A DNA stretch of 64,000 nucleotides from Tubulanus polymorphus. Taxonomy: Eukaryota; Animalia; Nemertea. The notes below the pieces were generated by a model that had not been told where the DNA came from, searched no databases, and saw only the letters and a program-made list of their open reading frames with translations. Location: positions 8,165,122-8,229,121 of the forward strand of contig NC_134030.1 in assembly GCF_964204645.1 (NCBI RefSeq), in the 5' to 3' direction. Positions 25,462 to 58,385 of this stretch are shown here, in pieces; within the stretch, counting starts at the first letter, position 1, and each line of letters opens with the position of its first letter. Made by a program: the position numbers and the translations under genes.

Positions 25462-25666
25462 GTGAACCCTAATGAGAACTCTTTGAACCCTAATGAGAAC
25501 TCCATGAACCCTAATGAGAACTCCACGAACCCTAAGAAGAACTCTTTGAACCCTAATGAGAACTCCACAAACCCTAATAACTCCATGAACCATAATGAGA
25601 ACTCCATAAACCCTAAGAAGAATTCCATGAGCCTTAATGAAAACTCCATGAACCCTAATGAACTCT
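25462..25666. repeat. 21-bp minisatellite (GAACCCTAATGAGAACTCCAT), about 10 copies
   Basis: Tandem array seen directly; explains the NPNENSM and RVHGVLI ORFs. Confidence 0.95.
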
Positions 25667-27361: not shown

Positions 27362-27448
27362 AACCAATCTCCCGATTCCAGAGATCCTAGCCTGGGAATG
27401 TCATATCCCTAATCACAAGTTAGGGTCTCAGGGAAAGGGCTAGTGGTT
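27362..27448 (-). ncRNA. mir-125: mir-125 (lin-4 family) precursor hairpin (mature 5p 27434-27413; star about 27395-27374)
   Basis: Minus strand reads UCCCUGAGACCCUAACUUGUGA, the canonical miR-125. The 3' arm CCAGGCUAGGAUCUCUGGAAUC pairs with it, and the basal stem AACCA/UGGUU is present. Confidence 0.98.
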
Positions 27449-28782
27449 GCCGTCGCCGAGCGACGGGTCGTCGGATATTCCAGCCCAGTCTCCTGCCCAC
27501 TGGATGTTTTTCATGTCGTCGAACCGCACAGGAATAAAGCGCCTGTCTGCCACTAGTGGCAGCGCGATCGTTCCAGACATTAACTCTTCCGCTATTCAGT
27601 CAGTCTGAACGCAGTGAATCAATACCACAGCCGCAGTCTGCTGCCTTGCGCGCTGTATGTTTTCATGTTTTCGTTGTATACCTTTTAAAACACAGCTGCT
27701 ATTGCATTTTTATAACGTTTTTATTGTTGCCGCTGCCGCTGCCGCCGCGCTATATATTTCTATACTTGCATAGATTTTAATAACCCTAGGCAACAACCAA
27801 CGCTATATCGGAGGATTACGACAGAAACTCTCTCCAAGTATGCAAGCTTTCTTTAATAACTTCGCCATCAATCCTGAATTGAAATATTGTTGTATCAGAC
27901 TAGAACTAAACAACGTTGGCCCTAGTATAAAGCTTAAAACGAAAATTACACCCATTACCATATTTCCCAGACCAAACAAATCAATACCAAATACATATAA
28001 CTAGAAAGTAGTTGAATTCGCCTGTATCATTTACCTCGCATAGAGTGGTGGTGGTTACTGGAGGTTGAGACTTGCTTAACACCATAAAAAGGGCGTCGTC
28101 AAAAAGGGCACAATTCTATCGAAGATGAATCAGAAAAGGACAATTCAGTCAAAAATGTGGCCCCGCTATTGGATTGTATCTTTTGACAATGACATTTTCT
28201 CAGGTACGCTGCCGTTTTTCATATCAATTAAACCGGACAGGTAGAGTTACCCGCAGAGAGAGAGACCTTCGACGATCTCGAATCAGACACTTACGATATT
28301 TATCTAATTATTGTTATTTTTTCAGTTGCCCGGACAAGCAGGTAGTTAATAGCTATACGCGGCGTTTTCTCATCGATCAACGTCTAGCGTTCACGGCGAA
28401 TCAATCATATAACATTAAGAGAGCCCCCCTCGACCGACAACGTGTAATACTAACGCCATCAAACATTCCAATTCCACCCGCGGGAGATCTCTGGCCGCCG
28501 AGGGACGACCAACGCTGCAGCTTCCAGACATACAAATAACTGCTTATACGTATATAGGCATGAATTACGTAGTCCCACAATGGAATTTTATACAATAAAA
28601 TTCATCAAAACGACACCACAACATTTTGGCTGTTGACTAACAGCTTGCATCCAGGCTGCTCGTCGACAGAACGTTTTAATTCAATCATATAAAATTCCTT
28701 TGTGGGACTTCTTGATTCAAGTCTACATGGATTAGAGAGTTTTATTCGACTACTAATGTAGGCATTTTTCAAACATACACAA

Positions 28783-28921
28783 CAGGGCCCAGTTGCTCAA
28801 CAGTTGGTGACAGTTAACCAGTTGATACCGGTAGTTGACATAGTGACCATTAAAAGTTCATTGTTACTATGGTATTTATCCGCCGGTTATCTTTTACCAA
28901 CTTTTGAGCAACTGGCCCCTG
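28783..28921. mobile_element. PIF/Harbinger-like palindromic MITE between let-7 and mir-125
   Basis: CAG-GGCCCAGTTGCTCAACAGTTGGT ... ACCAACTTTTGAGCAACTGGCCC-CTG. Confidence 0.75.
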
Positions 28922-29239
28922 CATTTTAACGTCAACAATGCCATAAATCCCGCCACAGACCAGTTATCAACTGTTTTCCATCATTGGAGCTATCAGTCTC
29001 ATTAAAACAGGAATTGCTTCAGTAATTGAAAACGAAACAAAAAAACCCAGAAAAATCAGTGAAGCTCATTAAACCCCTGGGACTTCAGACGAAATATTAT
29101 GAATGAAGCTAATCTATATGATCGGGAGAGCATGCGATGTATATCCTTACCGTGATGAATACTTTTCGTAAAACCGACGAAAAGAGTAAAATATTTGAAA
29201 CATGAATAGAATATCTATATGATGAGCTTGCGATGTTCA

Positions 29240-29330
29240 GGGCTCCCCCAGGGAAAGCTAGAAGATTGTACAGTTCTCCTGTTTTGATGTTATGCCAACT
29301 ATACAACCTACTACCTCATGCTGAAGGCTG
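29240..29330 (-). ncRNA. let-7: let-7 precursor hairpin (mature 5p 29318-29297; star 29273-29252)
   Basis: Minus strand reads UGAGGUAGUAGGUUGUAUAGUU, the canonical let-7. Star is CUGUACAAUCUUCUAGCUUUCC, the loop contains GGAG, and a CNNC motif (CAUC) lies 17 nt after the 3p end. Confidence 0.99.
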
Positions 29331-29839
29331 CCAAAAAGATCCTCCGATCAACTCTCTCTCGCTCTTCCGCAGCAGACATCCTTCGCAAACGCGCTAACCA
29401 CTCTTGTTTATAAATTAAGTATTAGAAGTTCAGGATTAAATGGTTTTTTTCCTATAAGACAGTACCTGAAATACAAGTCGACAATCTGACTGTTCCCGAC
29501 AGTACGAATAAAATTCATCGCTCGAGTAAAGCTTCATCGAGGTTGATGTCAATTGGAACGGTATTCGATGAATTGAATAAAATACCGACAACAAAATGGC
29601 TGCATTCGTATCTTACAGCCGATTCAGCATCAGCCTGTGATGAGACGTCTAGACTCGATGCGGAAAAATTAAAGTTCTTGACATGAAGAACGAGATTGAC
29701 GCTCAAGGCGATTGCGCTTATTTCTCGAATAACACCCCCCTCACAAAAAAAAAAAACGTTCACCCATTTCATACCGACCTAATGTCTTAACAAAACTCCA
29801 TATAACACGGGATCGTGGTATGCCGATATACCCCATATA

Positions 29840-29912
29840 GCAACACATACCCATAAATCCGACCTTGTGGGTTCTGTAAGGCTTACAAGTTCGGATCTAC
29901 GGGTTTATGCAG
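29840..29912 (-). ncRNA. mir-100: mir-100 precursor hairpin (mature 5p 29905-29884; star 29867-29846)
   Basis: Minus strand reads AACCCGUAGAUCCGAACUUGU(A), identical to miR-100 over 21 nt. The 3' arm CAAGGUCGGAUUUAUGGGUAUG pairs with it and resembles known miR-100-3p. A lower stem is present. Confidence 0.98.
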
Positions 29913-32119
29913 CTTGGTAAAATTCTGATCATCGTCGTCGTCCGATGCACCGTCGAAGTCACCTCCCGTATTCCGCAGTCGAATCCTACAAAGACACGAA
30001 ACAGAATAACGAAATTAAATACTTGCGATACATTCAATGATTTAATGGAATAGTTAACGGTGTCGGGTTTCCATCTCTCAACCGTGTAGCTATTAATAAA
30101 AAATTAAAAACACCGGACGAATAACGAAATTCCACCGTCGGGGAAAGTTCGATGAAAGTCAAAATATTTCCGCGAACATTTCATTGAAATATGAGGTTAA
30201 TTCGGTTTTTAATCCTAGGTAAGAAGCTCGGTGAAACCGTGGACAATTCCGTCCATTCAGAAACAGCCTTGCTGAAAGAATTAATAATTTCAATCTGATT
30301 CGGCTGATGAATATACGTCCCGCGGAAAACATGTTCTTCAAATTTCCCATACAAAGAAACGGATTAAGTTACGACCCCCCCCCCCATGGAGATAAATGGT
30401 ACTACGTGATTACAGTGTGGTTGCGACCAAAAAAGGCGCTGTAAGTATAATGAGCAATGCGACTGAAGCATTGCAACACAGACAGGATAGCTCTAGGTGT
30501 CTTACGCTAGACATCTGTAAGACCCCTAAAAATTTTCAGTGCCTAGCGTATCAGCGTTTATAATTTTGTTGAAAGAAAACCTAAAACAGTCTAATTTCTA
30601 TAAAATAAAAGCCAATTTTGTTGGCAATTCTGGTAAGGTGTCCTTTTCACATCGATTTTTGGTAAGACGATCAGATCTCGCATATAGAGAAATTCATCTT
30701 GAAATCCTGCAAACGTTATACTCAAACTGTGAGAGATATTTAGGCAATGTTAGTGCTTGTACACGCTTACTACCACCAGAGCAATAGTCTCGATATATCG
30801 CAAAAAGATTTTCGTCGAAATCCCTCTCAACTACACCATGCGGCACGTATGTGCAGCCAATATGTAAAATTGTGCGAACGTGAAGGTCGATGGGAGCTTA
30901 CACACGCAGAGCTTCGTCTGTCAAAGTCACTCGGTGCAAAACATTTCAGAGATGATGAAAAATGGTTGCGAGAATTAAACGTTTTGCACGCTGGCATCTG
31001 CATGGTGGTGGCGGCGGCGCTAGGTGACATGTCAACGATCGTTCTCGTTTCACCCGTAGAAATTACGAGTGAAAAAGCAGGATAATAACCATCGTCGAGC
31101 AGACAAGAAACATCAGAACACTGTATAACATACGTATTTTTATAAGTAAAATTGATAAAATATTTGCGTAAACACTGCATTCGCTGCTACGTTGTATATT
31201 GCCATTTTGTATATTGTAATTTTCACTCACATTGTCTAAATTGTCGACCTTGAGTTTGTCAAATAAACAGTAACTGTAAAATACCAAATAGACTGATGCA
31301 AATGCAAACGTCTCTTATATTCCGTCGAACAATCTAGCTAGTTTTTAAAGACTGCGCTTGATTAAAATTTTTTGATTCGAAAACCTACACGCCAAACAAC
31401 ATTTACGACGAAAAGAAAAAGGAAAAAAAAATGCGAGATCAACCAACGCGATGATCGCTCGCAACTCGGTTTCAACTAAATATGATTAATCGGAACAATT
31501 TTAAACAAATTAATCCGCGCAACTGATGATGCCTGCAGTTAAAATGATTTAATCCGGGACGACTAAAAAATCCGCCACCACCGATGTAGACATATTATGT
31601 ATCATCCGTACTGGAATATCAGGAAGATTTTTATCAAAGACACCCACTCTACTTCTATTTACAATTTTGCATAATGGATTATGCTTGTAATTAAAAATGA
31701 AATCTTTATGGGGGGGTCTTGTTACCTCCACCACCACCACTGTGTCGCGATCGGCAATTTCTCTTTCTCCGATCAATTCCGTAAGCACGTCGCATTGACG
31801 CAAGAAAAAAACAACACTATCACCGGCCAGTACACCGGTGGCGTATATACCGAGTATTACCCTACCCATAGCACTGCCGCCGCATTCTAACCACTCATTG
31901 TTTGATTGATCGATTCGATTCCGCTATACACGAATAATAAACTGAAATTTTAACGATATCTCGCCGACGAAAACCTTTTAAACAGATTGATTACTATCGG
32001 GGCTTGAAAGAAACAATTAGCTAGATACGCAGCAGCACAGGCTACATGAATCCACGAGCACTACTACACTGACTAGTAAAGCAGTATAGCACATGCACTA
32101 ACATTATTGGTAAATAGGC

Positions 32120-36889: not shown

Positions 36890-37385
36890 GAATATTACAT
36901 GATCATCAGGCTATTCCAAATGACTACTATGATAAGTTTTGCCAAAAATACTGGTTTTGCCCAATTGGGCAATTTCAATGTTTTAATTTACAAAGCCCAA
37001 CACAGGGAAACACGGAACAGAAACATGTTTCCAAATGTTTCCCTGAATCAGTTTCAACGCCCATATTACATGATCATCAGGCTATTCCAAATGACCACTG
37101 TAAGTTTTGCCCAATTGGGAAAATTCAATGTTTTAATTTTACAAAGCCCAACACAGGGAAACACGGAACAGAAACATGTTTCTGAATGTTTCCCTGAATC
37201 AGTTTCAACGCCCATATTACATGATCGTCAGGCTATTCCAAATGACCACTGTAAGTTTTGCCAAAAATACTGGTTTTGCCCAATTGGGCAAATTCAATGT
37301 TTTAATTTACAAAGCCCAAGACAGGGAAATACGGACACTGGAGACAGAAACATGTTCCCGAATGTTTCCCTGAATCAGTTTTAAT
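36890..37385. repeat. Tandem repeat, 3 copies of a 150-180 bp unit
   Basis: ATATTACATGATC.TCAGGCTATTCCAAATGAC ... AATGTTTCCCTGAATCAGTTT repeated three times; explains ORF 36854-37384. Confidence 0.9.
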
Positions 37386-38347
37386 GCCCACGATGCAGGA
37401 AAACATGGAAACAAGGAATCAAACATGCTTGATCTCATTGTTCCCGAAACACACATGACACAGGGAAACACTTGGAATGTTTCTGTCTCCGGTTTCTGGG
37501 TTTCCCTTTAGATGCTGGGCTTTATGAGAAACATGGTTTCCGAGATTTTGATTCAGCGTCTCGATCTGTTTCTCCGTTTCCTTGCGTCGCATGCGTTGGG
37601 TTATAGGGTTAGATTTTGACACTCGTGGTACTGAAGGTGAGGGAAAATTAGTGTATATATGTTGACAAATAATCAGTAAGTCATTAGAACTAAACTTTAA
37701 ACGGAGTCATGTGAAATCTTTCTAATTCTTTTTTCAAGAAGATGATTGCTGATAAAGCCATGTCACCATCTCTCTTTTATCAAAAATACATAAAGATGTT
37801 CATATATAATGTTATCAGAAACTGCACTTTTTTCTGTAGAGCGCGTCAACTGAATTTCTATTCAATTTCAAATTTCACGATGAAATATCCCGGATCTCTC
37901 TCAGGAGTTTTTTAGTCGAATCACTCGTAACTGAATCCTTCAAAACAAAACATTCATTTAAAAATGTATTTTCAAAATCTGATTGAGCTTTTTCATTTGT
38001 CGAACGACTTTTTTGAGCTGCACTCGAATGAAATAAGAATTCCCTCGCGACGGTGTATATGTCATACCTGTGTACGTCACTAGTCACAGAAAATACTTTT
38101 TTATTCACGATGCCGATAATAAATAAATCCATCGAGCCAGACACATTGCAATTGATTTCCTATACACACCCTCTGCGCGTATCTCGTATCAATTCTACAC
38201 GCAGGATCAAATGAAATAGTATATATATATACGTAGTCGAGTTTGTTGCAGATTGTCGTGTTTCTGAACTTATCTCTCGATGCAAAGAAGGCTGTGGGAT
38301 CGTTAAAAAATTAGAACACTATTCTGAGAAGAATATTCGATCAGACA

Positions 38348-38350
<3 letters not shown>

Positions 38351-38386
<36 letters not shown>
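38351..38386. repeat. (AATC)n microsatellite
   Basis: Seen directly. Confidence 0.95.
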
Positions 38387-41342: not shown

Positions 41343-42099
41343 CATTATAAAGAACTATCACCTGGCTATGGAAAGCAAACCAAAGCCAACTTAGAGCGAC
41401 TGACCAACTCCAACAAATTCATCAATCTGTCCAGCTAGCAATTTCTCGGATTTTAAGACAATCGAACGCTTACCTCTCAGTGGAGACACATACACACTTA
41501 ATATGTAATCCGCATCAGTAATCCAATGTACTAATCCAGCTATGAACGTGTTAATTCGAGTTTCGCACTAAATATTCCGTGTTTGCGACTCGCAGATCTT
41601 TACGTTTATACAGTTATTTTATGAATAGATCCAAAGATATATACATATACATATATACATAAAATCCGATCTGAACATTTCCATTCCGAGTTACGGCGCT
41701 TCAACCGGGATCGTCCACTTTAACCAAATAGTAGCCTCTTCTGCGAATCCTAATATAGAAAATAACATAAAAATGTAGATGATCTCAAATCAATCAACGT
41801 TAAATTTAGTTACCTTACAAAAAACACCGAAATACATAGTATATCAATTAACATATCGGGCCAAAACTTTCTTTTTTTTCTAATTCATCTCATGCATCTG
41901 AGGCGCTGAAAACATTAAAATTCTCTTCATCGGTCTGGAATTAAAAAACCCCATCCTCTCATTCAATCATTGGCGAAAAAAGAATTTCGAAAAATAATGG
42001 CCATTCACCGAGACGTATTAACAGGCTTCCAGGCACCCAGACTATATGGTATATATCGGCTTCAAAGACAGCCATTCATGCCGGAGTTGTGACTACGCC

Positions 42100-42640
42100 C
42101 CACTAGATTCGCTCGCACTGTTCAGTGCACAATCTAGACGAGATCGATAAATCGAGACTGCACAGTCGCCCGCGCGCGCGCTCGCTCGCTCTCTCGCAAT
42201 CGTACAGTTTGAATTTATGTGTCAACTGACTCATTCAATAAAAAACATACTGCCAGCGCGCACTACTATCCAGTAGCCTTTCCGGTGTATCATCATACAG
42301 CACCGGCCTACGGGGGATATGTGAAAACTAATTTCAAGTGGAGCGAGAGAGAACGGCTATGGCACGTCAGTCAGTCGAATGAGCGTTGAACAATGTCTGG
42401 GTCCAGCCTGATTTGACTAACAATAACCGGGTGCTCAGCCATTATCTCGCTGCTGCTTTCAGGAGGAGTTACACGATCCTATCCCGATGACCCATTTACC
42501 TCTGACGGGGGCAAGTTCGCGCGTCGCCGCGGCTAAAACCGGCCTTGACCCTATTTCAGTCCGCGCGGCTCTAGACAAGCTACTTTTAGATGACTAATGC
42601 AGAACTGCGCGGCCATATATAATTAGCATGCTGAGTCGGG
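42100..42640 (-). promoter_or_regulatory. CpG-rich promoter/enhancer-like patch
   Basis: CGCGCGCGCG/CTCGCTCG tract, TCAGTT Inr-like word on minus near 42226, a CTACGGGG copy at about 42308, and downstream minus-strand donors near 41812 and 41472. Confidence 0.35.
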
Positions 42641-43329: not shown

Positions 43330-43413
43330 CTTCATTGTATCATCGAGTCAAAAACGTAATCCTGTCCTTCACTGAATCGGCGCTTAAAATCCGTGAAATA
43401 GGCTATCAGTGAC
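43330..43413 (-). other. Candidate 84-nt internal exon of the host transcript
   Basis: Acceptor TTATTGTGTTTTATTTTGCAG|G at 43414/43413 and donor GAAG|GTAAGC at 43330/43329; both are near consensus. Confidence 0.7.
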
Positions 43414-48291: not shown

Positions 48292-49082
48292 CAGACAGTT
48301 ACAAATCCAAGAGAATCGAACGTAATAAAAATGATTATACCCTGATCGTCGAGTTATAACCCAGGCCTCTACAACCACCTCCCCCCCACCCCACTTTTCA
48401 TCGAAGAAAATTTTTCATATTACATTTTTCCATCGTTAATTATCTAAGCAGTTCAGCATTCGAATGAATTTCGGTATCTTTTAAAATGGCCAGGAAATGC
48501 ATCTCAAACGCTCCCCCAAAAAACTGCTTGTAATCCACCTAAACCTTTAATCGCACCTTCCCCCCAAAAAGCGAGGCAGCTCTAAGCCCTGTAACCAAAC
48601 CAGCTCAAGGCCCTATATCCTGTACCACTATGATTTCAATATCATTACATCCATTACGTATACATTTGATAATATTAGAAAATCTGATTAATTTTTGCTG
48701 ACTAAAAACAAAATGTAATTCGTTACTTACCATGTGTTACACTGCCACAACTCCACCTGCATCCTGAAGGCTTAGTTAATACACTACATCAAATATTCAT
48801 ACAGCGCCTCCCTACAAAGACATATACATACATACATATATGAAAATAATAAAACACGATTCTCATCGTCATAGTTGTCTCGAGTCAACATACATTTCCA
48901 TATAGGTCTGCAGTTTCAATCGATGTTCAAGGTTTTGCCGTTGTTTGAAAATGCAAAGCCTCGCGGCTAAATAGATATGTTCTAAATGATGGGAGCACAT
49001 CGGTGGCGAATCAATAGACGACGCGCGTAGAGGAGACCCTCGTGAAATAATTGGACATTTTTGGTACAATTGGAAAATCGGA

Positions 49083-49690
49083 TACCCAACAATGGGTACG
49101 AACGTTCACCCAACATAATGGGTATGAATGTACACCCAAGATAATGAGTATATATCTACTAACATCCAACATTATTGGTATAAATGTATGTACTAATACC
49201 CAACATAATGGGTATGAATTTCTACCCAACGTAATGGGTATACATGTAATAACACCCAACATCCAACATAATGAGTATGAATGTCATGTACTGACGCCCA
49301 GCATAATGGGTATGAATGTACACCCAACATAAAGAGTACACATGTACTAACACCCAACATAATGGGTATGAATGTATGTACTCATACCCACCATAATGGG
49401 CATACATGCATACCCAACATAATGGGTCAACATGTACTAACATCCAACATAATGGGTATACATGTATACCCAACATAATGGGTATACATGAAATAACATC
49501 TAACATAATGGGTACAAATGTATGTACTAATATCCAACATAATGTGCATACATGCATACCCAACATAATGGGTAAACATGAAATAACACCTAACATAATG
49601 GGTATAAATGTATGTACTAATATCCAACATAATGGGTACCAATCTATACCCAACATAATGAGTATGAATGTATCTACTAATATATGGGTA
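49083..49690. repeat. Degenerate minisatellite with core CCCAACATAATGGGTA
   Basis: About 20 variable-length units; the source of several overlapping spurious ORFs. Confidence 0.9.
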
Positions 49691-50119
49691 TCAATGTAGA
49701 AAATAACAATGTCAATATATTCTTATATCATATACATGCAGTGGTGTCTGCCTTTTCCATAGTTCGGCCCTTAAGCACTGCAGATCGGACAATCCATTGA
49801 GAATCAGAGAATTCGAAAGTACAGCATAATTCAAAAAGATCTTTGTAAAATTCAAAGGAATTCAGATACTGTAGACGTTCACTAGATATCGCACACCTTA
49901 AGAATACACTACAAATATAGTACAACACGACCAATTAATGACTGCTGACAATTGATTTAAATATCACATGTTAGATAATAATAAAACTAATCTAAAGCCT
50001 GTAGGCATTTGAAAAATAACGACGTCATTTCATGGAAGCACCCATCTTTTCTGGAATGGTCTATGCTAAAAAACTGAATTAGAATCAGCGTGATATACCA
50101 TATGTATCATGGTACAGAC

Positions 50120-50121
<2 letters not shown>

Positions 50122-50182
<61 letters not shown>
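50122..50182. repeat. (AT)n microsatellite
   Basis: Seen directly. Confidence 0.98.
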
Positions 50183-50186
<4 letters not shown>

Positions 50187-50989
50187 CATTTATAATGTAT
50201 GGAGACTGTACAGACACTCGCCGAGTCATAATTAACTGATCTATTAATTTGCTGGTTGCGCCACGAGTGTATTATACCTATCAATTGAACGATTATTTAT
50301 GATTGTTTTTTATCATATATTTACATCGACTACCAGACTGCTCGGCGGCATCGCTCATAAAAGAAACTACCGCGCGTCCTCTTTCGTTGGAATAACAACT
50401 CACCAATTCTCAGTAAGTTCTATCCCCGCCGATGACAATTATGACTAAGCTCGAATTTCAGCCGAAATGACACAAACAACAACAAACCTGCATCACTGCG
50501 CGGAATGATTGAATCCGTTTCGTAGATCACAATGCTGAACTACGCGTCTCAGCGGTTCCGTTCAGCCATATTTTCGGCCAGTAGAAAATGGTAGAAAGCT
50601 GCCACCTGACCAAGGGTCGTCACTCTTAAAATCCGGATTTGCACGAGAGTCTCGCATTGTCGATGACACCTGGCTATTGTCAATATGGCCTTACCGTCAC
50701 CTTTGAGTTATTGCGATGTACTCAGACAGTATTGTTATGTCTGAAGAGTCACGTTATTGTGGACAGCCATAAAAATGTCCCGTCTACAACACGTGTTCGC
50801 CCCTAACCACACTGACCAAACACGTTCAACTCCGTCCTAACACCGAAACCACCATCCATGCCGATTGGACGTGTCCACAACAATTGAAAAGACTGTATCC
50901 CATTCGAACTAATTGGATTTATTCAATCTTCACCCCCTATCTCGCCAATACTGATTCATTGACTGGACATCTATCTCTTCCACACCAGA

Positions 50990-52050
50990 TATGTTCAATC
51001 CCGTCCAAACCAATTGGACAAGTTCAATCTCCGCCATACCAATGGGAAACATTCAACCACACCAATTCAATTCCGATTCAATTCTTCCACACCAATTCAA
51101 TTCTTCCACACATGTTCAATCTTTTCCATACCAATTCAATTCTTCCATGCACCAGATATGTCCAATCTCTTCCATACCAGTAGGAAATGTTCAATCTTGT
51201 CCATACCAATTGGACAAGTTCAATCTCTTCCACACCAATTCAATTCCTCCATACCAATTGGACAAGTTCAATCTTGTCCATACCAATTGGACAAGTTCAA
51301 TCTCTTCCACACCAATTTAATTCTTCCACACCAATTCAATTTCTCCATACCAATTGGACATGTTCAATCTTGTCCATACCAATTGGACAAGTTCAATCTC
51401 TTCCACACCAATTTAATTCTTCCACACCAATTCAATTCCTCCATACCAATTGGACATGTTCAATCTTGTCCATACCAATTGGACACGTTCAATCTCTTCC
51501 ACACCGATTTAATTCTTCGACCCCAACTCAATTCTTCCATACCAATAGGACAAGTTCAATCTTGTCCATACCAATTGGACAAGTTCAATCTCTTCCACAC
51601 CAATTTAATTCTTCTACACCAATTCAATTCCTCCATACCAATTGGACAAGTTCAATCTTGTCCATACCAATTGGACAAGTTCAATCTCTTCCACACCAAT
51701 TTAATTCTTCCACACCAATTCAATTCCTCCATACCAATTGGACATGTTCAATCTTGTCCATACCAATTGGACAAGTTCAATCTCTTCCACACCAATTTAA
51801 TTCTTCCACACCAATTCAATTCCTCCATACCAATTGGACATGTTCAATCTTGTCCATACCAATTGGACACGTTCAATCTCTTCCACACCAATTTAATTCT
51901 TTCACCCCAACTCAATTCTTCCATACCAATAGGATATGTTCAATCTTGTTCATACCAATGGATTATAAATTTCATCCATACCAATTGGACATGTCCAATC
52001 TTGTCCATACCAATTTGACATGTTCGATCTTGTCCATACCAATTCAACAC
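50990..52050. repeat. Satellite with a 96-bp higher-order unit (29+29+19+19 bp)
   Basis: CCAATTGGACAAGTTCAATCTTGTCCATA + CCAATTGGACAAGTTCAATCTCTTCCACA + CCAATTTAATTCTTCCACA + CCAATTCAATTCCTCCATA. 96 bp is 32 codons, which explains the 334-aa and 300-aa ORFs. Confidence 0.95.
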
Positions 52051-53299
52051 ATCCTTAAAACAGCTCTGTGCATGGACCAATCAGATTGAGTCATACATAT
52101 GGAACTCAGAATATTGACCAATCAGAATAGTCTTTGCAACTCATATATAACTTGGTATACTGACCAGAGTAGAGTATCAGAATATACAACACGATTTAGA
52201 TAGGTTGCATCAAAACGAATAATATCATTTGAACATGATTCAGATATCATCAAAAATTCATAATGAAATTTTCATACCATAGATAGGATTAGTAAGGATT
52301 TCTATGTGTCCTGGATTGAACAAAAATCAACAGCAGTCAATATAAGACTCCCATCGGTGGGCTTTGCTCATTGACTAGAAATAGAATGAGAACTGCTTAG
52401 TGTGGTTAATGATTCTTATTGAACAATAGTAAGTACTGCATCAGCAAAGTCTTAATGCTCTTTTTGTAAAGTCAATTTGACAAACGTTGTGCAAAGATTT
52501 AAGTAAACTTCAAAAACTCTAAATTTAGAAGACCAACTCGTCATTGAATGCTTACGGTCTGAAAGCTCTATCGATATCCTTGTGCAATCATTACCGAACA
52601 AATGAAATAGAAAATCTGGCTCGACTCGGAAAGACCATCCTGATTCCCGGTATTGCAAGGACATTGCGTATAGAGAGACATTGGATTTTTAATAACAAGC
52701 GAAATCAATGTAGCATCGGAGTAAAATTTCATGTGAACCATCGACGTTCGGTTAAAATTTAGACTTAACGATCATGTGCTAGAATTCACATGGTGACATT
52801 CGCTTGTACTGCGATGGCAAAAAGCAATTTCATTCGAACAGATTAGAGCGTTGTCACGGGGCCCGACGAGGCCCCACTTTCACAACATGTTACCAGCTTC
52901 ATCAGTTGAATGACGAAGTGACTGAGTAAAGAAAAAAACAAACCCCCATGAAACAGGGGGGAGGGGGGTATCTTATCTTATGAAATCATCTTGAATGTTG
53001 AAACAAATTCGGAATCAAGTCTAAATGTTAGGATTACTGTAACGAAAACTTGGTATAACCAACAGCACAACTGTCATCTTTTATGGTGGCCCTACAACCT
53101 ATTCTGGCCATTGGTCCACTGACTGACTGTAAACTATCTGTAGGCCTTTACGTTCGATATTGAAAAAACCTGATAAGAAAAATCACCAAGAAATCCAACA
53201 CGACAAGAGATGAAAAGTGGAAGTTCTGCAATACATATTATGTAAGAAGTGGGAACACACATGATGGATGACGGTTATCAGCTCAAGAGAACATTCAAT

Positions 53300-54369
53300 T
53301 GGCACCTCCATGACAGTAATGAATACCTGGATCTTCAAAAATTATATGAAATCATTTTGAAAAATAAAAAACGGCTTAGAAAAATATGAAAATAATAAGA
53401 ACTTACTAGAGATGAGGATGGCGTGGAAAAGACGGCCTGACGGAAGAGAGCAAACGGTCGTGTGCGCCAACGACACAAACCCGGCGCCAACGTCTGAATC
53501 CGGATATCTGGGGACAAAATGGCGATGGTAGCGGCGCGGCGCGAAACTTATCAATTGGTGCTACGGGGTTCCAAAAAGACGCGTCTGAATAAAAACCGAA
53601 CGACGATCCCGAAAAGCGATCACAAAGTGAGTCTGACTTGAGAAAGTTTGGAAAAAAAAACTTCATCAAACTTTAAACAAATCGATCCAGTCCATCAAAG
53701 AAGTTGTTCATGCGCCAAATCGATACACCGATCCCATCGCCTGATCATCACCCCAACTGTCCCAGCATTGCATGTACATGCAATAAATTAACCATTCATA
53801 AAAAAAAAAACCACTCACCTCATCGCCGTATTAAAAAAGTTAACCAAACTTCACCATCGACGACTAAAAATGAGGAAATCGTCAGCAAACGCACCGATCA
53901 AATGCGCCAAATCCGCCCGAGAGTGGCGACGGCGGCGAGCGCGCACCAACCGAGAGCGCGCCACCATGTTCGGCGGCCCCAAAATTTCAGGGCAAGTCGA
54001 GACTACGGGGTTCACTCGACGTCGTCTGAGCCGCAGCGATTGGCCAAATAATAATCACCAAAAAATACGAACATACCCTCCATGCCGTCGATTGTGCGAG
54101 CCGCGCGAACGCCAAAAAATTCAAAAGGATTTTCGGCGGTGAGACACCTTTTAACCGTCGGCGGATGGATTTTTGAATCTTAACGGACATCCGGTGACGA
54201 GCTGGAGACATCGCCGCATACAATAATGAATAATGGAATTTATGTTGTTGCTCGTGGTGCCACCATAAAATGGCGGGACGAACGAGGCGTTCTGATTGGC
54301 TAACCTGAATGTCGCCGAAAAAATAACTCTCGCATTTTTTAAACACGATCAACAAACTATCATTATCTG

Positions 54370-54400
<31 letters not shown>

Positions 54401-56000
54401 CAAAGTTATCAGCTAGCTTTAAAATATACGTATAACATAGTGTGGGTATATACATGTATGCTCGTTCTGATTGACAGTACTCTGCGGATCAGTACCAATC
54501 GCAAACGACATAGTAAATGTATATCGCAACAGTACTATCCGCCGACAACCAATCGTAACAAAGAACGGCTACGAAACGGAAGAAGTGCTGAAATACCGGG
54601 ACGGGGCGGACGACGAACCTACCTGAAAACGCGTACGCGCGTATCGTATCCGAAATAAAAACCGAGATGAAACAGCGCTGTAATCCGGAAGAGGCGGCCG
54701 ATAAGGAGACTGCGCGAACTCGCTATAAACCGAATACGCGATAAATTATCATAATTATCCACGAAATTGACGACGAACGATGAACCCGGTAAAAATTTGG
54801 CGCGCCCCTCGCTCCCGGCGGCGTTACTACGGCCAGCGAAAAAAGCGCCGGTTTCCAAAATGTTTCCAAGAACAGTCCGGTTTTAGTCGAGCCTACGGGG
54901 TTCACCACCAGTCTGAGAGCAGATCCGTCTCGCGGAACACAATTGGCCAAATTTCACCTTCCCCTCTGTACCATCGGTTCGGTAACACAAAATGCAATTG
55001 CCAATATCCAACGACATCGACACCGTCGACCGATTCAATCCGCGCGATACAGACCGGAGGATTTATATACATCAGAAACACGCACACAATGCTGCTGGGA
55101 AGTACACACACACAACGTACATGCAAACGACGAACACAACGGCAGCCGGCAACCAAAATAAAAAACCGTACGCTTAAAAATGGCGGTTCAGCAATGGCGG
55201 GAACTACTTCATTATCGCCGGTCGAGATGCGCGCATGTGTAGTGTGTCATCGTAATTTACATGCCGGTCTACTATAATGATATGTACGCAGACACGAGAA
55301 ATAGTAAGGCTCTCTCCGGTTACGACGTGCGGGCAGACGAGAATTACGTTCATCATACTATAGCAGCCGCAGTCGCAGGCGACCGACTGGGGCTTTTTTT
55401 TCCTTCGAGAAAAAAAGGGAGACCCCGGAATTGTTTGCAAAGCACTTCATACATCGGTCTGTCGTCGCTCGATAAAAGAATATCTTTGGCAAACGCTACT
55501 TCTACTATACATGAAAGCAGCCGTATTGAAAGAGAACTGTGTTAGCTGGCCAGACATACTTGCGTATAAAAATATTGCGTGATAGACAATTAACTTCCGA
55601 GAGACCGGCTCTAACACAAGAGTTTGTTATAGCACGGCGATAAAAAACGCATAAAAACGTTCAGGACTTAGAATGGTATGACCTCCTTTTCGCGCACGCC
55701 GGAAAAAGGTGTCCGAATTCGAAGCGCCCGTCACCGGCGCCGCATAAAACTAAAAACGCCATCAAAAAGAACAACACGATTATAGGACGAAGTCGTACGT
55801 ACCCAAAAAACGGCCGCGGCCCGGCGTAGATTCCGCGCGATCGGCGACGTCCGTTTTCGGCGCGGAAATGGCGCGAGCGCGCGCTCGCGGGCGCAACGAG
55901 AGCGGGGCCCGAAAAGGGGAAGATCACGCGAGAAGAGACACACACCAGAAACGTAAGAGTGCTACGGGGTTCTCAGATGCTTTCACAATACCGTACGGAT
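53300..56000 (-). promoter_or_regulatory. CpG-rich multi-promoter region with candidate alternative first exons
   Basis: High CpG; YY1-like AAAATGGCG at 53516, 54267 and 55177; E2F-like GGCGCGAAA/TTTGGCGCG; several CCAAT boxes; four copies of CTACGGGGTTC; minus-strand donors after 55803, 54623, 53819 and 53407. Confidence 0.65.
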
Positions 56001-58385
56001 TTAAAAAGTGGAGCAAGTCAGCAAAACTTCTCGCTATATAATAGATCAGACTCCCCCCTCCCCAAACAACAATGGAAACTATATCGACGTGTATATATAT
56101 ATATCCAACTCAAAAAACTCGAATAGGACACCACCGATCGAAACGTTTGTTTAAAGTTTGAAGAAGCGATTACGCCATGCTCCGATTGAAATCGGAAGAT
56201 AAAACTTTTCCCCAAATCTCGAGAACAGTTTCTAATGACAGCCGTACGAGTACACCTGTACTTGTATCTTTACTAAGCGAAATCGTTTTTCTTTTTTAAT
56301 ACAATCGATGACAATGAACGCCAACTGGAATATCTCGTCAACATGCATGCGTTCGGAATTCATCACCAGATAAGGCGGGTCCCCCCTTTTTTGTCATTTA
56401 GCCTATCCAGCAAAAAAAAAAAACCAATTACGTAAAAACTGGTACGAGCACAATGACAACAATAGACGTTGGGCTGATTCGTCTCATAATAGTATTATCG
56501 TCGCCATAGTTGCTTAAAGTCTGTTCGGAAAAAAAGACGCTTTTGACGAATAAACGAGTCGGCAGAACAGAGACGTTCATTCTCATCGGCTTCGGTTTGT
56601 AATAATGAAAAAAAACAACCAAACAAACATATCTATGAACAGCGCGACATAATGAGTAAACACGATTTCAAAAGCCGGTCAACGGTTTTGTTTTCAAAGT
56701 GAGCTTCGTAGTCGGTCTGGTTTGATTTCGTTCACATCATTGTTTTGGAAAAAAGACACACTACGATACCCAGTTGCCCTAAATCACATCTACATGCGAT
56801 ATTAGTGTTCTCAACAGCATCGTCTTTGTCATCATATACCCACGCTAAAAACCACCGAAAAAACCTCAATTCAATTAGGACGTCAGAGACCCTGTGACTT
56901 AAAACCGCAGACCGGCTTCGTTACTACGGGGGGGGGCCCTGAAATAAACAGCGTAGCTGTCTTATAACTGTTATGATAGCTTCGTTTTCCTTTAACAGCT
57001 GAAAAAATCTTCTCATCATTTCTTTCCTCATTCGCATAGCGCAAAACATAGACAAAGGTTTTCACAAGTTTCAGATAGTGCCGCATATATATACGTAAAC
57101 ATATATATATATATATATACTCGTGATTATGCATGCATACTTGCCCGTAAATCCGAAATGATATGTAACAACATTAAGGTGTTCTCTGCCGCTGTATTCC
57201 AGAAGCTTCCGGCAGACATTTTTCGACATAAATCATTCGGCCTAGCGTTTATAAATCGTGCGTGCCGTGCCAATAGAATCTGTCACAACCTGACCTCGTT
57301 GGGTCGCGCGGGAGGCGGTCGTGATTTTCGCTAACCGCTCCGGTTCATTAACATAACGGCCGGCCCATTTTCGAATAAGGCTCGGCTGATGAACATTAGT
57401 TGAACATAAGATTTATACGCGGCAGAACAGTAGTGTAAATAACGCATTATTGACAGCTACACGGCAATGATATGTTAATATCGGTGAAACGAAAGGCGGA
57501 GCGAACGACTGGCTCCGCCCATTTGTTTCCACGGGGTATCATCACATCTGGAATCGATATAATAAGTTCTCATAGGGATGAACGTGTGTGTAACAATGTG
57601 TGTAAGTCAGTGGCAATTCATTTCTAATCATCGATACAACAATTTACACTAAGATACAAATCAATTGAGCGATATTTCGCGATATGAGCGCATTCAGTCG
57701 ATAAAAGGTAATTTCATGCAGCCAAGAAGGCCGAAAACTTCATCGAGGGCTACATTCTTTTTACATTTATTCTCAGGCTCACGACCATTCATATCAGATA
57801 TTTCGCTATACAGAGCCACGAAATCTCAATTGTGTAAAATAATAAAGAATAATTGTAGTAATTGTTAACAAATTGACAAAACTGAAATATACAGCTTTCA
57901 TAGAAAAACTGCAATAGTCATTTAGTAGCAATCACGGGAATAGAATACTAAAATCTAGTAAATGCTGAATCTTAATGTTGTATACTGCACAGAATACAGG
58001 CAGCATTGCGACTACAATAGTGCCCCCATCACATGAAATGGATTCACATAAAATGTCAGAGATATCATTATCATTCTATATTTCGCCATCGCATTCATGG
58101 CCATTTAAGACAATATTTGGTCATATAAAACATAAAAAACCTTTAAAAAGCTTAGAATGACGGGTTTCAACTATCAGTTAACAAATTCTAGAATTTTAAG
58201 GTTGCCCTTTTTCATTGCCTCTGAGTAATATGCTGGAATTGGCAAGTTTCTGTGAAGGGTACACCAAAATATGGCTAGGATACCTAACTTAAATCATCAT
58301 AAGAAAAATTCTCATTCGATTTCCTAAGCGAGGAAAAACTTCCTCAAGGCAACCGAAAACTTGGTGAAAAATATATCCGACGTAC

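Follow-up and report, generated by a model that had tools for sequence, protein, structure and literature searches.

For the mir-100/let-7/mir-125 cluster, which counts as one of the most ancient animal genes of developmental timing, it is known from a few model species only how the primary transcript is started and how one start is chosen over another. The locus analysed here raises the question in a specific form, as an 11-letter word stands four times, letter for letter and in one orientation, far upstream of the three microRNAs. In the following, the word and its surroundings are described within the window, i.e. the whole 64-kb stretch of DNA that was analysed (C6, positions 8165122-8229121, in a 268-Mb assembly), to which all coordinates refer; its distribution in the genome, the signals that accompany it and its resemblance to miR-100 are then examined, and the explanations that may account for it are weighed against each other.

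The microRNA cluster and its upstream region

The cluster lies on the minus strand. The mir-10-family hairpin (29912-29840, 52.7 bits with Rfam) reads miR-100 in its 5′ arm, let-7 (29318-29298) and miR-125 (27434-27413) are exact, and an acceptor on the same strand is found at 29985, just ahead of the mir-100 hairpin. The four copies of the 11-mer, which reads CTACGGGGTTC on the plus strand, are placed 24-26 kb upstream of the cluster; because the microRNAs sit on the minus strand, the copies are read in that sense as GAACCCCGTAG (table 1).

All four copies are held by the stretch from 53.3 to 56.1 kb, the most GC- and CpG-rich of the window: over these 2.8 kb the GC content is 0.47 and the CpG observed/expected ratio 1.61, against 0.39 and 1.06 for the window as a whole. 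The T>A asymmetry of the minus strand also peaks here, across 52.5-56.5 kb. On a finer scale, each copy stands at the upstream edge of a GC/CpG spike, with a GC content of 0.76, 0.68, 0.78 and 0.54 at +50 to +99 and 4-11 CpG per 50 nt.

Table 1. Features of the window that bear on the four-copy word, with positions counted from its first letter.
Feature	Positions	Strand	Remarks
TATA-like TATTATATA, unit 4	56035..56043	-	~60-70 nt upstream of copy 4; read directly
Copy 4 of GAACCCCGTAG (first on minus strand)	55962..55972	-	TCAGAC upstream absent
Weak donor TGG/GTACGT	55795..55806	-	last exonic base 55803; 6.3 bits; 170 nt after copy 4
Palindromic CCAAT box ATTGGCCAAAT, unit 3	54942..54952		25 nt upstream of unit-3 TCAGAC
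TCAGAC, Inr-like or Smad-box-like	54911..54916	-	7 nt upstream of copy 3
Copy 3	54893..54903	-	extended form GTGAACCCCGTAGgCTCGACT, common to copy 2
Strong donor CAG/GTAGGT	54615..54626	-	last exonic base 54623; 10.8 bits; 281 nt after copy-3 start
Palindromic CCAAT box ATTGGCCAAAT, unit 2	54039..54049		9 nt upstream of unit-2 TCAGAC
TCAGAC	54024..54029	-	10 nt upstream of copy 2
Copy 2	54003..54013	-	extended form GTGAACCCCGTAGtCTCGACT
Strong donor GAG/GTGAGT	53811..53822	-	last exonic base 53819; 11.8 bits; 195 nt after copy-2 start
TCAGAC	53583..53588	-	11 nt upstream of copy 1
Copy 1	53561..53571	-	GAACCCCGTAGCAC common to copy 4
Additional TCAGAC	53631-53636 and 53492-53497	-	
Weak donor CTA/GTAAGT	53399..53410	-	last exonic base 53407; 6.9 bits; 165 nt after copy 1
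Candidate internal non-coding exon	43331..43413	-	acceptor ttttattttgcag/G; donor AAG/GTAAGC, 11.0 bits
mir-100/let-7/miR-125 cluster	27413..29912	-	would be fed by upstream modules

Four exact copies in diverged surroundings

The preliminary description of this DNA, made from the letters alone, had reported four identical and co-oriented copies, and this holds: CTACGGGGTTC has four exact matches in the 64-kb window, all on the plus strand and starting at 53561, 54003, 54893 and 55962, a number that was reached in none of 100 dinucleotide-preserving shuffles (0/100). Relaxing the search to one mismatch adds no copy within the window, and with two mismatches nothing rises above background. The partial copies reported at 42308 and 56924 are present and in the same orientation, in that the 8-mer CTACGGGG recurs there on the plus strand, with the part in common limited to CCCCGTAG and GAA absent. 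Among the non-simple 11-mers that occur at least four times in the window, CTACGGGGTTC is the sole GC-rich one and also the sole one clustered in otherwise unique sequence, the remaining ones being scattered AT-rich words or members of tandem arrays.

Similarity between the copies beyond the word is limited to short stretches. Copies 1 and 4 have the flank GTGCTACGGGGTTC in common, and the shared flanks noted earlier for copies 2 and 3 were found as AGTCGAGnCTACGGGGTTCAC and the palindromic ATTGGCCAAAT, along with GTGAACCCCGTAGnCTCGACT; these two copies also have a common 21-nt core. When the four units were submitted to MAFFT, only the word aligned, and local alignments of the unit flanks scored no better than shuffles (one of the 12 pairs gave P = 0.01, out of register). 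The flanks being unalignable, with scores at shuffle level, the 11-mer is an island of identity, intact at 44/44 positions between flanks that have decayed to random. A recent segmental or tandem duplication was considered as the source of the copies and rejected, the units being unalignable outside the word. Among contigs from other individuals or haplotypes, variants relative to the assembly were seen at 53556, 53573, 54014, 54015 and 54020, which puts them within 1-7 nt of copies 1 and 2; 0 fall inside a copy, in a comparison whose 28 differences over 5.9 kb carry little statistical power.

A coding reading of the word, as a peptide repeat, is unlikely, since the plus-strand open reading frames across copies 2 and 3 do not read the word in the same frame. 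A search of protein space with the 165-aa frame that spans copy 3 found nothing.

Rarity of the word in the genome

A genome-wide count, one of the checks proposed in the preliminary description, returned 42 exact copies of CTACGGGGTTC in the 268 Mb, about 10 of them at the let-7 locus or in repeats, whereas the reversed control word gave 22. Because the genome has only 42, four copies in 2.4 kb are far beyond chance, which would give ~0.0004 copies over that length, and the word is nearly confined to the locus. With up to one mismatch, 1477 occurrences of the word compare with 1324 of the control.

As to the 38 genomic sites outside the locus, four lie in a tRNA-like SINE (GGTTCGAACCCCGTAG; sites L002, L013, L019 and L021) and two in another repeat (L020 and L022), neither of which matches the units of the window; at the remaining sites the flanks are unrelated. 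When 52-58 kb was compared with the 38 sites by BLAST, only matches of 13-16 nt were returned, which are the word itself. A dispersed repeat family, which the preliminary description had raised against its own proposal, is thus not the source of the copies: the flanks in 52-58 kb are unmatched at, and unrelated to, all 38 other sites, and an origin from a SINE or other dispersed repeat was rejected. A metagenome scan for the 21-mer of copies 2 and 3 found nothing, and the literature yielded the word only within unrelated primers. To our knowledge, it fits none of the Krüppel-like, NF-kB, Myb, GCM, CTCF and Su(H) sites.

Signals accompanying the copies

Upstream of three of the copies TCAGAC does occur, as had been claimed, although at distances of 7, 10 and 11 nt instead of the 8-12 nt given at first, so that copies 1-3 conform to the composite TCAGAC-N7/10/11-GAACCCCGTAG. 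The hexamer is locally enriched, with five minus-strand occurrences in 53492-54916 (1.4 kb) against ~0.4 expected. Genome-wide, TCAGAC-N7-11-GAACCCCG is found 11 times against 5 for the control, 3 of the 11 being at the let-7 locus, and the composite of TCAGAC and the full word is private to that locus. A role as a general promoter word or composite was considered and rejected, a genome-wide excess over the control being absent; the word, unenriched genome-wide, is not a general promoter element, and such a role cannot be argued for it or for the composite from other genes.

The absence of TCAGAC at copy 4 and the varying distance between TCAGAC and the word are features that would be incompatible with a strict downstream core-promoter element. 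Palindromic CCAAT boxes are found in units 2 and 3 and a TATA-like sequence in unit 4. If the CCAAT boxes stood at their usual -60 to -100, the starts would fall downstream of the word and not at TCAGAC. The CpG-rich region further contains the E2F-like TTTGGCGC and four co-oriented copies of the YY1-like AAATGGCG, the latter pointing the other way and counted against the multi-promoter reading discussed below.

The 5′ splice sites were scored with a generic position weight matrix. All four donors described after the copies are where they had been placed, those ending at 54623 and 53819 being strong and those at 55803 and 53407 ordinary, with scores (6.3 and 6.9 bits) at background strength. 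In the whole window only nine minus-strand donors reach at least 10.5 bits, and two of these are the donors after copies 3 and 2; with this threshold, 2/4 copies have a donor 100-320 nt downstream (P = 0.006 against random positions), and 4/4 copies have a downstream donor of at least 6 bits (P = 0.015). On the plus strand, 52-58.5 kb holds no donor of at least 10 bits. For the upstream donors, the small and convincing candidate exon at 43413-43331 could serve as a shared splice target.

Sequencing runs covering the region

A search of sequencing runs for transcription gave four runs and one possible RNA run (2015). In the four runs, the share of words present tracks the fraction of the genome covered by the contigs, by which they look like DNA, and the possible RNA run has no contig on 52400-58300. 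Run X1 covers the whole of 52400-58300 in the manner of genomic DNA. The contigs of X2 and X3 are patchy and stop at GATC, after which the same 12-nt linker GATGGACGAACC follows; the linker with the letters after it is absent from the genome, and contigs that end in GATC plus linker indicate proximity-ligation DNA and not transcripts. No spliced joints were seen in the run contigs over 52400-58300, the four runs being DNA.

Resemblance to miR-100

On the strand of the microRNAs the word equals the 5′ end of miR-100 (AACCCGUAG, its first nine nucleotides) with one extra C. It contains AACCC and CCCGTAG and matches miR-100 nucleotides 3-9; a match of 7 nt to any one of the three microRNAs would arise by chance with a probability of ~0.03-0.06. 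This resemblance is unexplained and statistically marginal, and is not counted as evidence.

In 52.5-57.5 kb the Rfam mir-10 model has no match, even with E allowed to rise to 10. For eight windows of 111 nt that surround the copies, the folds are not better than those of shuffled sequence (z from -0.5 to +2.8) and in six they are worse (z +0.8 to +2.8); no hairpin was found in them. When the sequence past the word was compared with the rest of miR-100, the best value was P = 0.03, not significant over four tests. Hence, while the word carries letters of the seed region of the mir-10 family with one C added, the copies differ from members of that family by being devoid of hairpin, Rfam match and extended similarity, besides being sense-oriented to the microRNA, and decayed mir-100 paralogues were rejected on the first three of these grounds. 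Long-range pairing of the word within the transcript was rejected as well: the best complementary partner on the minus strand of 24-58 kb reaches -13.7 kcal/mol, compared with -19.3 for a perfect duplex, and shuffled words find better partners. The RNA-level element that the preliminary description had offered as its second possibility is thus unsupported, neither hairpins nor a complementary partner having been found in the predicted transcript.

A possible zone of alternative promoters

A word that is perfect and co-oriented while its flanks have diverged, paired with TCAGAC in three of its four copies, regularly placed and near-private to one locus bears the signature of a selected cis-element. 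The reading that we favour, at a probability of roughly 0.4, is that the word is an oriented cis-element, selectively kept, which would tag alternative promoter/first-exon modules of the host transcript of pri-let-7. The CpG-rich stretch of ~53.3-56.1 kb would then most likely be the multi-promoter zone of a non-coding host transcript, each copy of GAACCCCGTAG tagging one promoter with its first exon. The modules would be clearest in units 2 and 3, where a CCAAT box and the Inr-like TCAGAC are followed 7-10 nt later by the 11-mer, and onward by a putative GC/CpG-rich leader of ~200-280 nt and a strong 5′ splice site. We infer that the 11-mer would be bound by a single factor of high sequence specificity, probably a DNA-binding protein whose recognition site is long, and that this factor would co-regulate the alternative starts or select among them. 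The array of alternative first exons proposed in the preliminary description finds partial support in the architecture (strand, TCAGAC three times, CCAAT, TATA-like sequence, GC spikes and two strong donors), whereas its other two donors do not exceed background.

If the copies were instead homotypic sites for one DNA-binding protein in an enhancer, a silencer, a Polycomb-type element or an insulator of let-7, they would not stand one-to-one with starts, and TCAGAC would serve not as an initiator but as a partner site, e.g. the Smad box CAGAC. The variable distance of 7-11 nt fits two paired protein sites better than it fits core-promoter geometry, the AAATGGCG words may be taken as YY1/Pho-like and accompany the CCAAT boxes and the E2F-like TTTGGCGC in the region, two of the four donors are weak, and in humans SMAD2/3 occupies the MIR100HG promoter and drives the gene (PMC12239510). 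However, typical site clusters are degenerate and these four sites are exact; with orientation free, all four would agree by chance in 1 case in 8; the word has no genome-wide excess at up to one mismatch; and it is regularly placed at the upstream edge of a GC/CpG spike, with the donors next, so that this explanation is regarded as rather unlikely.

Base pairing or an RNA-binding site would also require copies that are exact and strictly co-oriented, and the word could act at the RNA level, either in the 5′ leaders of pri-let-7 or, as CUACGGGGUUC, in antisense promoter-associated RNA, where its reader would be an RNA-binding protein or a small RNA such as miR-100. The likeness to the miR-100 5′ end would fit, and surroundings that fold worse than shuffles would leave the word accessible; yet the similarity to miR-100 stops at the end of the word, the 7-nt match is within reach of chance, hairpins, a mir-10-family match and a competitive partner are absent, and a sense copy, lying on the strand of the microRNA itself, is no target for it there, which makes such a role improbable. 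More doubtful still is a neutral relic or a product of chance, left over from ancient duplications at the locus or from a repeat family and functionless now. The common 21-nt core and CCAAT word of copies 2 and 3 would fit an old duplication, and the word also occurs inside the tRNA-like SINE elsewhere in the genome, but it has stayed intact at every position while the flanks decayed, BLAST finds nothing longer than the 13-16 nt matches between the window units and the SINE or any of the 38 other sites, and the expectation by chance is minute.

A more specific proposal, and the least probable of those considered, makes the word a feedback handle between miR-100 and its own host gene. Antisense promoter RNA of each of the four modules would carry CUACGGG-G-UU, a bulged match to miR-100 nucleotides 1-9, through which miR-100 in nuclear Argonaute could adjust the choice of the pri-let-7 promoter that fires. 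In a milder variant, the word would be a private promoter-choice element for the cluster, served by a dedicated DNA-binding protein with a long site.

Relation to known systems and significance

As a tag of alternative promoters, the word would belong to an arrangement that is itself already known, namely that of alternative promoters of a microRNA host gene, within which the element is a variant. In Drosophila, let-7-C is a long spliced non-coding primary transcript. Human MIR100HG, the homologous host gene, gives rise to 101 transcripts in 11 TSS clusters, a precedent in accord with the multi-promoter reading, and its promoter is SMAD-responsive and bound by SMAD2/3 (PMC12239510). The window resembles both in that a cluster far downstream in a non-coding spliced host, with several possible starts, is predicted, and it resembles MIR100HG further in the local enrichment of TCAGAC, which contains CAGAC (cf. 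the SMAD-responsive promoter); it differs from both in that its starts and exons are sequence predictions. A repeated exact word for each start was not found described for MIR100HG or let-7-C in the literature examined.

In the clustered variable first exons of the protocadherins, the promoters share a 'conserved sequence element' that is bound by CTCF. The likeness consists in a short co-oriented element present once per putative first-exon promoter, the remainder having diverged, and it suggests that promoters could here too be chosen through a single factor; in contrast, the word has no match to the CTCF consensus, there are four units only, and the host RNA is non-coding. The initiator consensus is YYANWYY, and the downstream core elements MTE, DPE and DPR need fixed spacing and recur at many genes. 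TCAGAC fits YYANWYY and the word would be at about +12 to +26, whereas in the window the spacing has a spread of 4 nt and the composite is restricted to the locus.

The sequence observation is well founded, and the function is a proposal drawn from it. An oriented element found at a single locus, once for each putative start, would provide an experimental handle for finding the factor by which let-7 is switched on in a spiralian, and could help to test whether promoters of microRNA host genes are chosen by means of a shared tag.

Elements accompanying the 11-mer

Besides the four exact copies of the 11-mer, the putative promoter region contains a YY1/Pho-like word, AAATGGCG (see table), which occurs only once more in the window (35849, minus strand); its four copies run in the direction opposite to that in which the 11-mer reads towards let-7, and no register is found between these four words and the 11-mer copies. 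The minus-strand word TCAGAC is present five times in 1.4 kb (53492-54916), against about 0.4 expected, and is compatible with the YYANWYY initiator consensus and with the Smad CAGAC box alike. An E2F-like word, TTTGGCGCGCC, lies at 54796-54806, within the putative leader of unit 3, the surroundings of the third 11-mer copy.

The partial copy CCCCGTAG (42308-42315, minus strand) forms the end of a pyrimidine-rich stretch, ttttcacatatcccccgtag|G, which by score is a 3′ splice site; such a tract is absent from all four full copies. Among the other exact 11-mers in the genome, L002 (C1:12.06 Mb), L013 (C4:9.37 Mb), L019 (C7:6.83 Mb) and L021 (C8:0.53 Mb) belong to a tRNA-like SINE family with GGGTTCGAACCCCGTAG and, since this sequence is carried by the SINE, part of the other genomic copies derive from a T-arm-like sequence. 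Two further sites, L020 and L022, represent another repeat, with two copies that are 87% alike across 480 nt.

Sequencing runs and repeats

The contigs of sequencing runs X2 and X3 break at GATC (53621, 54925, 55925 and 56047) and from there run on into one identical 12-letter stretch, GATGGACGAACC; this stretch plus what follows it in the contigs is absent from the genome. The GATC ends and the 12 letters thus identify both libraries as linker-containing proximity-ligation DNA, so that their patchy coverage must not be counted as expression.

The long arrays at 49-52 kb, whose GC skew is extreme, produce long spurious ORFs. Weak, sub-threshold Rfam matches to mir-297, mir-3149 and mir-1277 were rejected as spurious products of the (TA)n microsatellites at 54364-54398 and 57083-57146.

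Features of the window (positions in nt)
Feature	Position	Strand	Remarks
Tandem array, 21-nt period	25463-25660		downstream of miR-125
Good acceptor	29985	-	closely upstream of the mir-100 hairpin
Tandem array, three units of ~150-170 nt	36890-37470
(TCAA)n run	38350-38380
Further strong donor	41474	-
Candidate non-coding internal exon, 83 nt	43331-43413	-	strong acceptor and strong donor
Long tandem arrays	49000-52100		extreme GC skew, down to -0.57
YY1/Pho-like AAATGGCG	53517, 54268, 55178, 55866	+	n=4, all in one orientation, in the same 2.4 kb as the 11-mer copies

A candidate host transcript

Judged from the splice signals in the sequence, the 83-nt candidate exon, the donor at 41474 and the acceptor at 29985 may together sketch the outline of a spliced host transcript, which would carry the microRNAs in its last exon.
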